The translations under genes and the position numbers were made by a program. Source: Macrostomum lignano (Eukaryota). Taken from it: a stretch of DNA of 64,000 bases. Shown one piece after another: positions 35,901 through 50,900 of the stretch. Every line of letters starts with the position of its first letter. Position 1 is the stretch's first letter. Under the pieces are notes generated by a model. The model was not told the DNA's origin, ran no database searches, and saw only the letters and a program-made list of their open reading frames with translations. The stretch is taken from NCBI GenBank assembly GCA_002269645.1, contig NIVC01002437.1, positions 109,805-173,804 of the forward strand, read 5' to 3'.

Positions 35901-38900
35901 AGGAGAAGTGGCACCATTTGTGAGAGGGGCGGATGGAGGAGAAGTGGCACCATTTATGTGGGGGGCGGATGGAGGAGAAGTGGCACCATTTATGTGGGGG
36001 GCGGATGGAGGAGAAGTGGCGCCATCTATGTGGGGGGCGGATGGAGGAGAAGTGGCACCATTTATGTGGGGGGCGGATGGAGGAGAAGTGGCACCATTTA
36101 TGTGGGGGGCGGATGGAGGAGAAGTGGCGCCATCTATTTGGGGGGCGGATGGAGGAGAAGTGGCGCCATCTATGTGGGGGGCGGATGGAGGAGAAGTGGC
36201 GCCATCTATGTGGGGGGCGGATGGAGGAGAAGTGGCGCCATCTATTTGGGGGGCGGATGGAGGAGAAGTGGCGCCATCTATGTGGGGGGCGGATGGAGGA
36301 GAAGTGGCGCCATCTATGTGGGGGGCGGATGGAGGAGAAGTGGCGCCGTCTGTGGGAGGGGGGCGGATGGAGGAGAAGTGGCGCCGTCTATGGGGGGGCG
36401 GATGGAGGAGAAGTGGCGCCATCTATGTGGGGGGCGGATGGAGGAAAAGTGCCGCCTTCTGTGGGAGGGGGGTGGATGGAGGAAAAGTGCCGCCTTCTGT
36501 GGGAGGGGGGCGGATGGAGAAAAAGTGCCGCCGTCTATGGGGGGGGGCGGGGCGGATGGAGGAAAAGTGCCGCCTTCTGTGGGAGGGGGGCGGATGGAGG
36601 AAAAGTGCCGCCTTCTGGGGGGGGGCGGATGAAGGAGAAGTGGCGCCATCTATGGGGGGCGGATGAAGGAGAAGTGGCGCCATCTATGGGGGGGAGGCGG
36701 ATGAAGGAGAAGTGGCGCCATCTATGGGGGGCGGATGAAGGAGAAGTGGCGCCATCTATGGGGGCGGATGAAGGAGAAATGGCGCCATCTATGGGGGGGG
36801 GCGGATGGAGAAGTGGCGCCATCTATGGGGAGGCGGATGAAGGAGAAGTGGCGCCATCTATGGGGGGGGCGGGTGGAGAAGTGGCGCCATCTATGGGGGG
36901 GGGGCGGATGAAGGAGAAGTGGCGCCATCTATGGGGGGGCGGATGAAGGAGAAGTGGCACCTTCTAGGCGAGGATCGGGGAGCGTTGAACATTTCTTAAA
37001 GCTTGCCATAATTTAACCCACAGATCCAGAGCAAAATGTCGGTCACTGGTTGACAGATGATAAAATTTTATAAATTAGCCATTTTTTTCGCTAATGTCTT
37101 CACACAGTTTCGCACAAATAAAGAAGTCTGGCTCTAGAAAAAAAATAGACTGCCAACCTAAATCCAATCCCTAACCTAAACCATAATCCTAAGCCTAAAT
37201 ATAAGCAGTAGCACAGCAATGAATTCAAGTCTTACTCTTAATTATAACAACAACAAAGAAATGATGCATCTTTTCTGCTGCGCAAAAACTTCAAAACTAT
37301 ACCGTGAAATATAAATAACGTAGTGTTTCTTTTATAAGGGGGTGCTCGACTGCTGGCATATGAAACGCATAGCATAAACAACAAAAAAGTTGTTGCAAAA
37401 GAAGTCATACACAAGCGAAAAAGTGGCGCCGGCCTTTTAAGAGCCTGGGAAAGCCGCATCAAAACACGGATTGTTTATGCTTTGTGGAAGCCTCTTGCAC
37501 AATATTTCTCTGAAGGCTATAGCATAACAACGTGCTTGACCATCCTATAGTCTAAGACAGCAGCAAGCAGAGAGGCCTCATAAATGGTCCAGTTGCTAAG
37601 GCGCGCTTTGCTTCCCAACCCACTTGCCTAAAAGTAATCAGAAACTGCATCCCGCCAAGTGGAAACTGATCCCGACAGGCTCTTATAGTCGAGTCAAAAG
37701 CTTTGAAAGAGAATTTCAAGCGCTGGAGGACCTTCAGCTCTGTGAAATTTATATATTTGCTGCAGATTGCAGATGACACATATACATAGCATTAGCACTG
37801 CATAGCAACAAAGAAATTGCAACAAAAGCTAAAACTGCGTCCCGAAAGAAAGATAGATGGAAGACAGAACCACCTGTAACTGTATCACTGTTATCAAGGA
37901 CTCTAAATCAGAGCTCCACTGGATTGGAAACCAACAATATGGTGATAACTAATAAGCAATATCGTTTACATTTAACATGACTCGTTTTGCTTTGACTTGG
38001 TTGCACTATTTACAGAGTCGATTATTCAGCCAGGGAGTTTTTCCGTGCGGGGGATGGTCGGCTGAAGATAGATAGATAGATAGATAGATAGATAGATAGA
38101 TAGATAGATAGATAGATAGATAGATAGATAGATAGATAGATAGATAGATAGATAGATAGATAGATAGATAGATAGATAGATAGATAGATAGATAGACAGA
38201 AGATAGATAGACAGATAGATAGATGTCTCGTTTTGGCACCTCCTGATTCACTAGAATGAAGGCAAGTAAAAGATAGTATTTGGGCCACTTTAATGCATGT
38301 AGCTACCTAAAATATCCTAATATTTTGTCTGTTATGAGGTTCATGACCCCCTATCCCTATGGAGTCACATCCTGCCAACGCCCTGCAGTTGCAGTCTACG
38401 TGATACTCTCAGGGAGTCCATGTAGTATAAAAGAATCATACGGACGGGAAGAACGGAAACACAAAAACCCACCAGCCGAACTGCATCTGATCTCTCATTG
38501 GCCAGCAGACGATGCGCCGGAACCAATGGGAATGTTTCCACTTTGATGGAAGTCATATGCAGGCAGATTACACACCTGACGCATCGCATATATGAATGCA
38601 ATTAATATTCACCTGGTCGCTGATGAGGCGTAGCCAACGTAACAATCAGCGGCACTCGGCCTCGATCGAAGTCTTCCAACGTCATCGCGTGACGAGCAAC
38701 CAGACCGCCCTACAAATTTGAATAAGATCATGTATCGATTTGACAATAGCAAGACAGCCAGTGCAGGTATTTACGATGCCAGCAGCAAGGCCAAGTTGTC
38801 GAAAAGTGGCGGTGGAGTCGACAGGCGAAAAGTAAGTTAATTCTTTCCTTTAGAACTTTTTCAGACTTTCTGATTTTTTTAAAGCCAGAGGTTTTTTAGA

Positions 38901-47900: not shown

Positions 47901-50900
47901 ATAATAGGAAAATTTGCCTTTTCCAAATTTTATTTAAGGCTACAAAAGTCGACTTCGAACTCTGCAACAGCAGCAGCAACAGAGGCAACAACAGCAGCAG
48001 CAGCAGCATCAACAACAATCTGGCAGTGGCATCTTGCCGTTAGCCATCGCCGAACGCATCCGGCGAAGACGCTGCTTCGCTGACAGCTCATTGAATCTGC
48101 CATTCTTCTTGGCGCAACCAAACTCTGTCGCAGAGAATCCAACAACTTGTCCTACAACTGCAACGTCATCAAGTCTGCTATTGCCGCCAGTGCCTCATCT
48201 ACCGCCCCTGCTGCCACAGGCGCCAATGCAAACTCCCGCGCTACAAACTGACGCAATGGATTTAAGCAACAAAACAACTAAGAAAGGTGGCTTATCAAAT
48301 TTTTCTGTCGAATCTATATTGGCAAGGAGTTAGGTTTGAACTGACAACTCGATTGCCGACAGTGTAACGCACAATAACTGTTTCTCCTCAGTTAAAAATC
48401 ACAGAAAGTATTGCTGCAACCAGTTTAACTTGGCTTTACAACTTTTAGCCAAGACTTAGGACCATTGTTAACGGAACCCATTTTGTGGAAATCGTTTATT
48501 TTCAACGATAACTTTAATTTTCAGCAAAGTAATCTTGGCTTAGCTTATGAACAATTTTAATGTACATTAAAAGCTTCATTTCGCCTTTAATGTCACAAGC
48601 CAGTATTTGCCTTTGCTTGCACCTGTATTTTAGCTTGAGTATAGAAAATTGACAAGATTAGTCAGTTCAGAACTCACCATTGAATGCCCGACCAAAACGA
48701 TTGAAAACTTTGCGCGACTTGAATACAGCGATTCAATGTGGTCAACCACGTGGCGAACAAATTCTGAGCAAAGGAATTATTGTTATTGTAATCAAATTTG
48801 ACCCTATTTCTAGCCATCTATTCTGTTCACTTGGTTTTTAAATTTATAAAAAATAAATATATAAATGTAAACACAATTATTTATTTGGCTTACACTAACT
48901 ATACATTGAAATACAGACTTACCACTTTGTCGGTACAAAAATGGACCGTGAAGAGCAGAAAATTCCTGAAATGTTAATTGCTTTGCTTTTTAGACTACTG
49001 AACTGATCTGGTCAGTAGGATGTACGGGATTTATTTAGCCTGTAGAAAAATTACTCGATTGCAGTAGTACACTTACACTATTCAAGTCAACAGCAAAGCA
49101 ATCGAATCTGGTCTTTGTGCCAAGCGTTTTCCTCATCTGGATTGCTACAGAAGCCAGCGAGCGAACCTGCTTGTGGCTGCCATCATTGCCAGGTATGAAT
49201 AGCAATGGCGAGCCTTCAAAGACGCTGCGACTCACTGGCTCAGAGTGCCTGGCAGTTCGAAATGGGAAATAACAAGTCAGATGCAAATTCAAGAGATTGA
49301 AAAACAAAGACCCAGCAATTAATATAATATAGGCAAATATGAAGAACTTACCCTTCTGTATAAACAAACAAATTATACTCAGGAAACTTTCTTCTTACAG
49401 ATGCTGGCAGAGTGACAGGCTAAAAGGTAAAAGTTATGTAATGTCAATTCTTCAAAAGACAAGCTAAGATATTAAAACATAAGCTATCTTTTAAACAAAA
49501 CATTTTAAATATTCTACTAGTGAAATTAAAAAATATGATGATAAAGTCTAGATATATATAATAAATATATTTAAAAACCTTAGATAAATCAATACAAACA
49601 TGCTATTACAAAAGCCTGTAATAATTGGGATACTAATACTTAACCTTTAAGGTGTTTTTTGTTTTTTAAGCCTTAAGCCTTACTAAAAAGATGTTAGTTT
49701 TGCAATTGGCCAATTGCTATATGTGATATAGTGCATCATACAGCTTTAAAGCCTATAACAAAGACTTAGATAAAATAGGTCCTAGCACAGCTAAGTAATG
49801 CAAGTGCCACTGAGAGTAAAAACGAAGCAAATATGCTTAAATAAGAAATAATTATATATAATGGCTAAAATACTTGGGTATCTTAGCCAATTGCCATGCA
49901 TGCAAATTTGCATATACTACTATAGGTGCCATTGTGTCATATAGACATTTTAGGACTTGTCTACCGGGTGTCCGGATTGAACGGAAACGCTGCTTAAAAC
50001 ATCGTTAATTACGTAATCTTTCGCAAAATTCAAAATTTTGCATGGGTGTCAGAACCAGCAGAAATCACAGAATTTAATACATCCACTCTTGCAGCTTTAT
50101 TCCTAACCATGGCTGAGCACGAGGCTCAAAGACGAGCAATCGCTGAATTACTTTGCGCTGGAAAGTCAACTAGCGACATCAGAGAAGTGCTCAATGTGAG
50201 CAGAAAGAGGATTTTCACTGTGAGGAAGCTGCTGAACGACACAGGAGATGTCACCAAAAGACATGGGGGTGGTCGTCCGAGGACAAAAAGGACGAAGAAG
50301 ACCGTCGCAGCCGTCCGGGCGAAGGTCAACCGAAATCCCCGAAGGTCGATTCGCCGACTGGCACGTGAGCACGACATGAGCAAGACGACAATGTCGGAGC
50401 TCGTCAAAGAAGACCTCGGCATGGTGTCCAGGGTGGTGGTGCCGAAGAACCTCATCACTTCGAAGCAGAAGGTATCGCGTCTCAAGCGGTGCAGGCAGTT
50501 GCTCACGTGGGTGAAGAACCACGGCTCGCTGGTGCGCGTGTTCAGCGACGAGAAACTGTTCACCTGTGACCAAGCCGTGAACAGGCGCAACACTCGCTAC
50601 ATCAGCGCCGCCAGCAGCGCGGACACACCTGCCCACGTGAAGTACAGTATGAAGTCTAAGCACCCGGCCTCCATCATGATGCTGGGCGTCGTTGCGAGCG
50701 ATGGACGGAGGTGTCCCCCCATTTTCATCAACCCAGGCACCAAAGTGAATGCTGCATGCTACCAGCAGCTGCTGCAGCAGCACGTGCTGCCTTGGCTGCA
50801 TCAGCAGTACCCTGACGGACAGTACGTGTGGCAGCAGGACGGTGCTCCGGCTCACACAGCGGCCACAACCCAGCAGTTCTTGGCAGACAACATGGCGAAC

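Follow-up and report, generated by a model that had tools for sequence, protein, structure and literature searches.

A 64,000-nt stretch of DNA from Macrostomum lignano (contig NIVC01002437.1, positions 109,805-173,804), called the window in the following, carries on its minus strand the gene for the glycosylphosphatidylinositol (GPI) inositol-deacylase PGAP1. All coordinates given below are window positions unless another contig is named. Intron 5 of this gene contains, on the plus strand, a DM-domain gene of the DMRT2/dmrt11E class, referred to here as dmrt. We consider it likely, with a probability of about 0.72, that dmrt is an intact gene with four coding exons and a product of 271 amino acids (aa), that it resides completely within this one host intron, and that the two genes form a lineage-specific pair which is not functionally coupled. 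A first-pass annotation of the same DNA had proposed a dmrt11E/DMRT2 gene nested antisense in PGAP1, and this proposal was borne out: all exons of the gene model are located at 38710-48677 on the plus strand, with exons 2 to 4 assigned by homology and exon 1 and the poly(A) signal by features of the sequence.

A DM-domain gene within PGAP1 intron 5

When the translations of the minus-strand exons are concatenated, they match one near-identical protein, M. lignano BOX15_Mlig029025g2 (P0121, annotated as GPI inositol-deacylase), while all other matches have at most 49% identity. Aligned exon by exon, this protein and the window are 99-100% identical. P0121 carries the domain PF07819, and the gene shares with PGAP1/Bst1p GPI inositol-deacylases the PGAP1 domain, the GHSMG lipase motif, and the subsequent SIGGGxRD and TDHxxIVWC motifs. 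The GHSMG motif can be read directly across two exons. Exon 5 ends with GTT TTG GTC GGG CAT TCA ATG, followed by GTGAGT, at 48678, and exon 6 begins at 38709, where the acceptor TTTGTAG is followed by GGC GGT CTG GTT GCT. P0121, which is encoded on another contig (NIVC01004271.1), runs ...VLVGHSMGGLVARH... across this junction without interruption. The earlier claim that an intron at 38710-48677 splits the catalytic motif between GHSM and GG is thus confirmed, both by the exons themselves and by the protein that crosses the junction.

Contig NIVC01004271.1 is colinear with the window from 38066 to 49775, in reverse orientation and with 99.1-99.8% identity, and differs from it by about 45 small substitutions and indels. 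The two copies are thus either alleles or ohnologues that were assembled separately, or two assemblies of one locus. Since the genome of M. lignano is that of a recent hidden polyploid, with known assembly ambiguities (PMC10468722), one might suspect that the dmrt segment has been wrongly placed between PGAP1 exons 5 and 6. We regard such an artefact as practically negligible, because the second copy, which was assembled independently and differs at the positions mentioned, keeps the same order from exon 5 across the entire intron to exon 6, because exons 5 and 6 are continuous in the annotated PGAP1 protein, and because the intron position is ancestral (see below). The first-pass annotation had itself pointed to mis-assembly or split genes as the way in which its proposal could fail. 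This was checked, and mis-assembly was rejected on the colinearity of the second contig, with the annotated protein spanning the exon 5-6 junction.

The nested gene was recognized from a 73-codon open frame on the plus strand which holds a complete DM domain (ending ...VALRR). The match to the Pfam DM profile PF00751 has 76.1 bits (cut-off 27) and covers all 47 profile positions (1-47). In an alignment with 12 orthologues, each of the 41 invariant columns is kept, including the Cys and His residues of the intertwined CCHC/HCCC zinc ligands. Downstream of this exon, the peptide of exon 3 aligns weakly with the QKRxYQKxLRxLQQ region of orthologues, and exon 4 carries two further conserved motifs. 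Joining the four exons (Table 1) results in a clean open reading frame (ORF) of 816 nt for 271 aa. The three donors (GTAAGT, GTAAGT, GTGAGT) agree with the donor motif GT[G/A]AG of M. lignano, for which CAG is the preferred acceptor (PMC8629364). A direct junction of exon 2 to exon 4 was rejected because it breaks the frame, and so was a donor for exon 3 at 47598; only splicing from 47608 to 47939 preserves the frame. The first-pass annotation had given a coding sequence (CDS) span of 38730-48333. Its end is the stop codon at 48331-48333, and exons 2 to 4 within it are placed by homology, but exon 1 remains an ab initio model. The distances to the neighbouring host exons, claimed to be 20 nt from the start codon to exon 6 and about 345 nt from the stop codon to exon 5, were measured as 20 and 344 nt.

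For exon 2, a CAG acceptor at 40226-40228 was also considered, as it is in frame and has a better polypyrimidine tract. At 40221-40231, however, the second copy has a 9-bp deletion and one substitution, and the CAG is destroyed. This is the only difference between the two copies that was detected near any splice site of dmrt. As the deletion removes the CAG at 40228 from one copy, that candidate was rejected, and the AAG preceding 40264 is the acceptor which both copies have in common. At the other end of the gene, a single canonical poly(A) signal, ATTAAA at 48566, follows the dmrt stop codon before PGAP1 exon 5 is reached, so the 3′ untranslated region (UTR) is probably about 250 nt long and would end inside the intron.

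Table 1 Features of the PGAP1/dmrt locus in the window. Positions are those of the window.
Feature	Position	Strand	Description
PGAP1 exon 5	48678-48763	-	ends ...VLVGHSM, first half of the GxSxG lipase motif; peptide identical to P0121
PGAP1 intron 5	38710-48677	-	9968 nt, phase 0, GT...AG; between GHSM and GG; hosts dmrt and the retrotransposon
PGAP1 exon 6	38613-38709	-	encodes GGLVARHAM...TLATPHQRP; followed by G, donor GTGAAT
Candidate AG acceptor	38725-38726	+	3 nt upstream of ATG 38730; possible cis or spliced-leader trans-splice acceptor
dmrt candidate exon 1	38730-38831	+	34 codons; donor AAA, then GTAAGT; phase 0; ab initio only
dmrt exon 2	40264-40427	+	complete DM domain; acceptor AAG, then GAC; donor ACG, then GTAAGT, phase 2; by homology
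dmrt exon 3	47454-47608	+	acceptor CCACAG, then C; donor ACA, then GTGAGT; by homology
dmrt exon 4	47939-48333	+	acceptor TTTAAG, then G; poly-Q run; RRRRCFAD; FSVESIL; stop codon TAG at 48331-48333
C-terminal EH1-like motif	48301-48321	+	FSVESIL, in dmrt exon 4
Candidate poly(A) signal	48566-48571	+	ATTAAA; pattern match, usage predicted
Ty3/gypsy retrotransposon	42292-47209	-	with long terminal repeats; in dmrt intron 2; antisense to dmrt, sense to PGAP1; intact
20-mer x63	30000-31265		minisatellite
14-mer x39	31923-32474		minisatellite
30-mer x25	33301-34043		minisatellite; ends 19 nt from PGAP1 exon 7 at 33282
36-mer x46	35315-36966		minisatellite
(AGAT)40	38066-38224		tandem repeat

The class of the DM-domain protein was judged from database matches, motifs and alignment, and on these grounds it is a member of the DMRT2/dmrt11E class. 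A homologue search with exons 1-3, omitting exon 4, returned 1510 DM proteins, and the named proteins among the 120 listed matches are mostly DMRT2/dmrt11E, from insects, rotifers, molluscs, and vertebrates. By these matches, its nearest relatives belong to this subfamily and not to DMRT1, dsx, DMRT3, or DMRTA. Exon 4, although outside the search query, aligns with the motifs of the subfamily: RRRRCFAD corresponds to xRxRKRRxFAD, and the C-terminal FSVESIL to FSIESII, FSVESII, and FSVAAII of orthologues. An EH1 motif of the Groucho-interaction type has been reported for human DMRT2 and for fly dmrt11E (PMC1310626). No DMA domain was detected in the dmrt protein by the Pfam scan, and genes of the dmrt11E type are generally devoid of this domain (PMC6604209). 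In addition, the intron after VALR and before R occupies the same position as in the orthologue from the bivalve Tegillarca.

With DMRT2/terra from vertebrates and dmrt11E from arthropods the protein thus has in common a single N-terminal DM domain with all zinc ligands, the lack of a DMA domain, the R-K/R-R-R-x-F-A-D motif, the C-terminal EH1-like motif FS[VI]ExI[IL], and a length of about 250-270 aa. Its predicted architecture is an N-terminal DM zinc module, the RRRRCFAD motif, and a C-terminal repressor motif of the EH1/Groucho type. It differs from these relatives in several respects. Its start codon lies outside the DM exon, which calls for an upstream exon of 34 codons or for an AUG provided by a spliced leader (SL). 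The residues directly preceding RTPKC are DYA instead of the usual LL or SL. It has a long poly-Q tract, and it is located inside PGAP1, unlike the orthologues examined.

The first-pass annotation had envisaged a sex or developmental regulator. The part of this claim that refers to sex is unsupported, because the DMRT2/dmrt11E/terra class is tied to mesoderm, somite, and muscle patterning in vertebrates and panarthropods and not to sex determination (PMC6604209). A literature search on Macrostomum combined with DM domain or dmrt retrieved nothing relevant.

Start codon and functional state of dmrt

The open frame of exon 2 is preceded by a stop codon at 40207-40209 and has no in-frame ATG before the DM domain, so the start codon of dmrt must lie elsewhere. 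Among 743 candidates in the 7.2 kb upstream that lead from an ATG to a GT in phase 0, the exon at 38730-38831 is the only one with an 8/9 match to the donor motif, the next best having a score of 6. Across the whole window, with both strands considered (128 kb), there are 9 comparable sites, which is about 0.07 per kb. At this rate, the 1.55 kb that separate PGAP1 exon 6 from dmrt exon 2 should by chance contain about 0.1 of them. The GC content of the candidate is 0.49 while its flanks have 0.25 and 0.30; the same step is seen for the dmrt exons confirmed by homology (0.50-0.54, with flanks of 0.31-0.39). The encoded peptide ends with the basic residues RRK, as found in orthologues just before RTPKC, and the sequence shows no differences from the second copy. 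This makes it the best ab initio candidate for exon 1, and the balance of this evidence tips towards its being a real exon.

There is another way in which the same gene could obtain its 5′ end. The spliced leader of M. lignano, CGGTCTCTTACTGCGAAGACTCAATTTATTGCATG, ends with ATG, and about 30% of the genes are trans-spliced (PMC8629364). Flatworm leaders have this AUG at their end as a conserved feature, and according to PMC12582326, which cites Cheng et al. 2006 for this, it has been reported to act as initiator. If the leader were spliced onto the DM exon at 40264, its 3′-terminal AUG would be the start codon and the protein would read M-DYARTPKC..., with 238 aa; the ATG at 38730 would be unused and the mature 5′ end would be about 1.5 kb away from PGAP1 exon 6. 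Exon 2 begins in phase 0, and the leader ATG followed by GAC TAC... is indeed in frame up to the stop codon, but such a fit alone has a chance of 1/3. The missing in-frame ATG in exon 2 would be accounted for, and orthologues have very short N-termini on the same exon as the DM domain, e.g. MNKERRLLRTPKC in Drosophila busckii. On the other hand, the acceptor (TTGCAAG, followed by G) deviates from the motif for trans-splicing, [T/C]TNCAG, the second copy lacks the CAG at 40228 that would be the better acceptor, and the candidate exon 1 has a near-perfect donor in the correct phase, the GC content of an exon, and the terminal RRK. We therefore consider a leader-derived start codon rather unlikely and prefer a start at 38730. 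The first-pass annotation had suggested the AG at 38725-38726 as a cis- or trans-splice acceptor for an mRNA starting there. This AG is present, but its context, AATAAG, agrees poorly with the motif YTNCAG of M. lignano (PMC8629364).

Several observations weigh against an intact and functional gene with this four-exon structure. The National Center for Biotechnology Information (NCBI) annotation of the colinear contig contains PGAP1, the ORF of a retrotransposon, and an ORF of 79 aa in this region, but no DM gene. A protein database with 5.8 billion clusters has no close match to the DM exon, the best having 82% identity among the matches listed. For the parts outside the DM domain (exon 1, exon 3, and exon 4 without poly-Q) no match was found in the protein database at E <= 0.001; this includes the peptide of exon 1, for which no homologue was obtained. 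The acceptors of exons 2 and 4 are AAG and not the preferred CAG, and the orthologues from Tegillarca and Drosophila keep their ATG inside the DM exon. Finally, the two M. lignano copies have too little divergence to inform on purifying selection: in the 816-nt CDS there are 0 differences where about 2.6 would be expected by our own estimate (P about 0.07).

Part of this would also be seen if dmrt were a silent relic, or a young pseudogene that still looks intact. Such a copy might well be uncalled in the NCBI annotation and be missing from the protein database, which includes assemblies of sequencing runs, and a 4.9-kb retrotransposon resides in its second intron. However, the ORF of 271 aa extends over four exons without stop codons or frameshifts, the DM domain has lost none of its invariant residues, both C-terminal motifs are kept, all splice sites are canonical, and the retrotransposon is confined to an intron. 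Low-abundance transcription factors restricted to certain cell types may often be missed by transcriptome-based annotation, so the missing gene call fits a rarely expressed factor of this kind, as it also fits a silent copy. Because the ORF is intact, the invariant residues and motifs are retained, and the splice sites are canonical, we favour a functional gene and rate a silent relic as quite improbable.

The 79-aa ORF in the NCBI annotation is an intronless "gene" without any Pfam match on the minus strand at about 40554-40793 (21391-21630 on NIVC01004271.1), 126 nt downstream of the DM exon. This is probably no real gene but a spurious ORF, called on a fragment of a transcript. A transcript-based call would hint at some RNA coverage inside the intron.

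Age and filling of the intron

The large intron of the window contrasts with its counterparts in other animals. PGAP1 has a phase-0 GT...AG intron at the same position, between GHSM and GG, in the tapeworm Taenia solium (118 nt) and in two snails, Batillaria attramentaria (about 274 nt) and Elysia crispata (about 531 nt), while it has 9968 nt in the window. Judged from these gene structures, the intron position is ancient and the intron was originally short. None of the three loci has an annotated nested gene or a tblastn match to the DM domain. Conversely, when the surroundings of DMRT2-class genes were inspected in Adineta vaga, Tegillarca granosa, and Drosophila busckii, the neighbours turned out to be unrelated, and PGAP1 gave no match within 10 kb. 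The microsynteny of PGAP1 and DMRT2 was thus found in none of the six other animal loci examined, and as far as these loci and their sequences show, the linkage is lineage-specific. In human, DMRT2 (9p24) and PGAP1 (2q33) are on different chromosomes. The first-pass annotation knew of no such linkage elsewhere, and neither the comparison of the six loci nor a literature search, which retrieved no paper linking PGAP1 and DMRT2 in this arrangement, brought one to light.

The intron of dmrt between exons 2 and 3 is occupied by a retrotransposon of the Ty3/gypsy type. It has paired long terminal repeats (LTRs), which have been reported as 100% identical over 203 nt, while reading by script shows one mismatch, at the outermost listed base. 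Its ends are TG...CA and it is flanked by a 5-bp target-site duplication, AACAT (42287-42291 and 47210-47214). A single ORF (43011-47009) codes for 1332 aa with gag (CCHC), protease, reverse transcriptase, RNase H, and integrase domains. Compared to Ty3/gypsy elements in general it has no unusual features, and it matters here because it doubled the length of the intron. The insertion is recent and, by its sequence, the element is apparently active. It is also present in the second copy, at about 14970-20050 of NIVC01004271.1. There, the region for reverse transcriptase has an extra 176 nt (about 16586-16749, corresponding to 45423 of the window) with an 11-nt direct repeat, TCGGGCACTAC, on either side. 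The extra sequence may stem from a small secondary insertion or from an error of assembly, and it probably explains why NCBI called a product of only 1084 aa in that copy.

Together with one copy of the target-site duplication, the element accounts for 4923 of the 9604 nt of the dmrt CDS span, and without these 4923 nt PGAP1 intron 5 would have about 5.0 kb. The parts of the intron outside dmrt (20 and 344 nt) sum up to 364 nt, which is inside the range of 118-531 nt found for the intron elsewhere. In the simplest reading, a whole gene would have landed in, or would have been captured by, a short intron, so that the intron is now essentially the guest gene. We thus envisage that an ancient, short phase-0 intron gained dmrt in the Macrostomum lineage and later the 4.9-kb Ty3/gypsy element, so that the guest now makes up nearly the whole intron. 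It had been noted before that dmrt almost exactly fills the intron. The guest does span about 96-99% of it, but about half of this is the Ty3/gypsy element, which was not mentioned. As the ancestral intron was short, the flanks have only 364 nt, and half of the length is due to a young retrotransposon, the tight fit does not need a special explanation.

Overlap between the two genes

Host and guest would be transcribed convergently, and an overlap is expected between the pre-mRNAs, with the RNA of dmrt facing the intron RNA of PGAP1. The mature mRNAs would overlap only if the 5′ UTR of dmrt, counted back from the ATG at 38730, is longer than 20 nt. The 3′ splice-site region of PGAP1 intron 5 (38710-38755) is the reverse complement of dmrt positions -20 to +26. 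If exon 1 is correct, the branch point and polypyrimidine region of PGAP1, within the last 20-45 nt of the intron, underlie the first codons of dmrt, and a 5′ UTR of more than 20 nt, or the core promoter, would overlap PGAP1 exon 6. Two ATGs upstream on the plus strand (38596 and 38623) open an upstream ORF which ends at 38721. The 5′ UTR of a cis-spliced mRNA therefore probably starts inside exon 6 or in the 20-nt gap, unless the mRNA is trans-spliced at 38727. The first-pass annotation had deduced that the dmrt 5′ UTR or promoter overlaps the exon 6 acceptor and that the branch region coincides with the first codons. This geometry holds if exon 1 is correct, but a start codon from the spliced leader results in a distance of about 1.5 kb.

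From this geometry one might derive a functional coupling, in which the promoter or 5′ end of dmrt sits on the exon 6 acceptor and transcription of dmrt interferes in cis with elongation or splicing of PGAP1, or vice versa; a developmental regulator would, speculatively, be tied to GPI-anchor remodelling. The complementarity just described points in this direction if exon 1 is real, as does the upstream ORF (38596/38623-38721), which argues for a 5′ UTR starting in or just after exon 6 or for trans-splicing at 38727. Moreover, a cell in which both genes are active could not avoid convergent transcription over about 10 kb. However, the arrangement is kept in none of the six other animal loci and thus shows no sign of selection, and DMRT2/11E is not a class that determines sex. 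Animal genomes commonly contain nested antisense genes, for most of which no coupling is known, and this also counts against it here. We consider a coupling improbable. The earlier suggestion that dmrt is coupled to a housekeeping gene for GPI remodelling is unsupported, with the linkage being absent from all six other animal loci. Even further from likely, and highly improbable in our view, is a scenario in which activation of dmrt would block splicing or elongation of PGAP1 in cis, so that inositol deacylation of GPI anchors would become a downstream output of a DMRT2-type switch.

A nested pair of this kind has parallels. The genes OMG, EVI2A, and EVI2B are located in an intron of human NF1, and many nested genes occur in Drosophila. 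As in host/nested antisense pairs in general, a complete multi-exon guest resides on the opposite strand within one host intron, with overlap at the level of pre-mRNAs. The pair described here differs from these in that the guest fills about 96-99% of the host intron and, if exon 1 is correct, has its start codon only 20 nt from the 3′ splice site of the host. We regard it as a real but ordinary nested antisense pair, which is a new instance of a known arrangement, and this particular pair of genes has not been described before in the literature searched. The locus does not suggest a new mechanism.

The main gain is one of annotation. M. lignano, a model for regeneration and reproduction, appears to have an intact orthologue of DMRT2/dmrt11E with an EH1 repressor motif. 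Neither the NCBI annotation of the colinear contig nor the searched protein collection includes this gene, for which a model with coordinates is supplied here. The locus also illustrates how an intron that is ancient, and short in other animals (118-531 nt), can grow to 10 kb, first by the uptake of a whole gene and then by that of a retrotransposon. It may be useful as a small model locus for transcriptional interference and, in an animal with trans-splicing, for the choice between a gene's own ATG and the AUG of the leader. In principle, promoter or poly(A) signals in the LTRs of the Ty3/gypsy element could cut short the pre-mRNA of PGAP1 or give rise to antisense transcripts that run through the DM exon.

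Several minor observations concern the remainder of PGAP1. On the minus strand, the frame of exon 7 stays open for about 100 codons beyond the end of P0121 (32470-32760; P0121 has 377 aa and ends ...KIVGKPIG), and this extension still aligns with gastropod PGAP1, up to residue 440. Because the frame continues and still aligns, the deposited protein model looks truncated. The UniProt entry P0128 ("Transmembrane protein 44") fuses exons further downstream, at 31802-26986. Several PGAP1 introns of M. lignano are enlarged by transposons and minisatellites. Intron 6 and the region downstream of it (30000-38224) are densely filled with minisatellites (Table 1), and two of the arrays abut the large ORF of exon 7, so that the splice signals of this exon adjoin repeats. 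PGAP1 intron 1, between exon 1 (53261-53124) and exon 2 (49419-49351), harbours a plus-strand ORF (50046-51140) for a Tc1/mariner-like transposase of 364 aa, with weak DDE_3 and HTH matches.

Elsewhere in the window, a plus-strand open frame (14077-14919) matches the ligand-binding domain of Cys-loop neurotransmitter-gated ion channels with 101 bits and is an exon of an unrelated gene on that strand. Donor-like sites with a score of at least 8/9 against MAG/GTRAGT are unevenly distributed in the window, the plus strand having 95 and the minus strand 38. The excess on the plus strand probably results from tandem arrays which contain GGTGAG, such as the 20-mer at 30000-31265.

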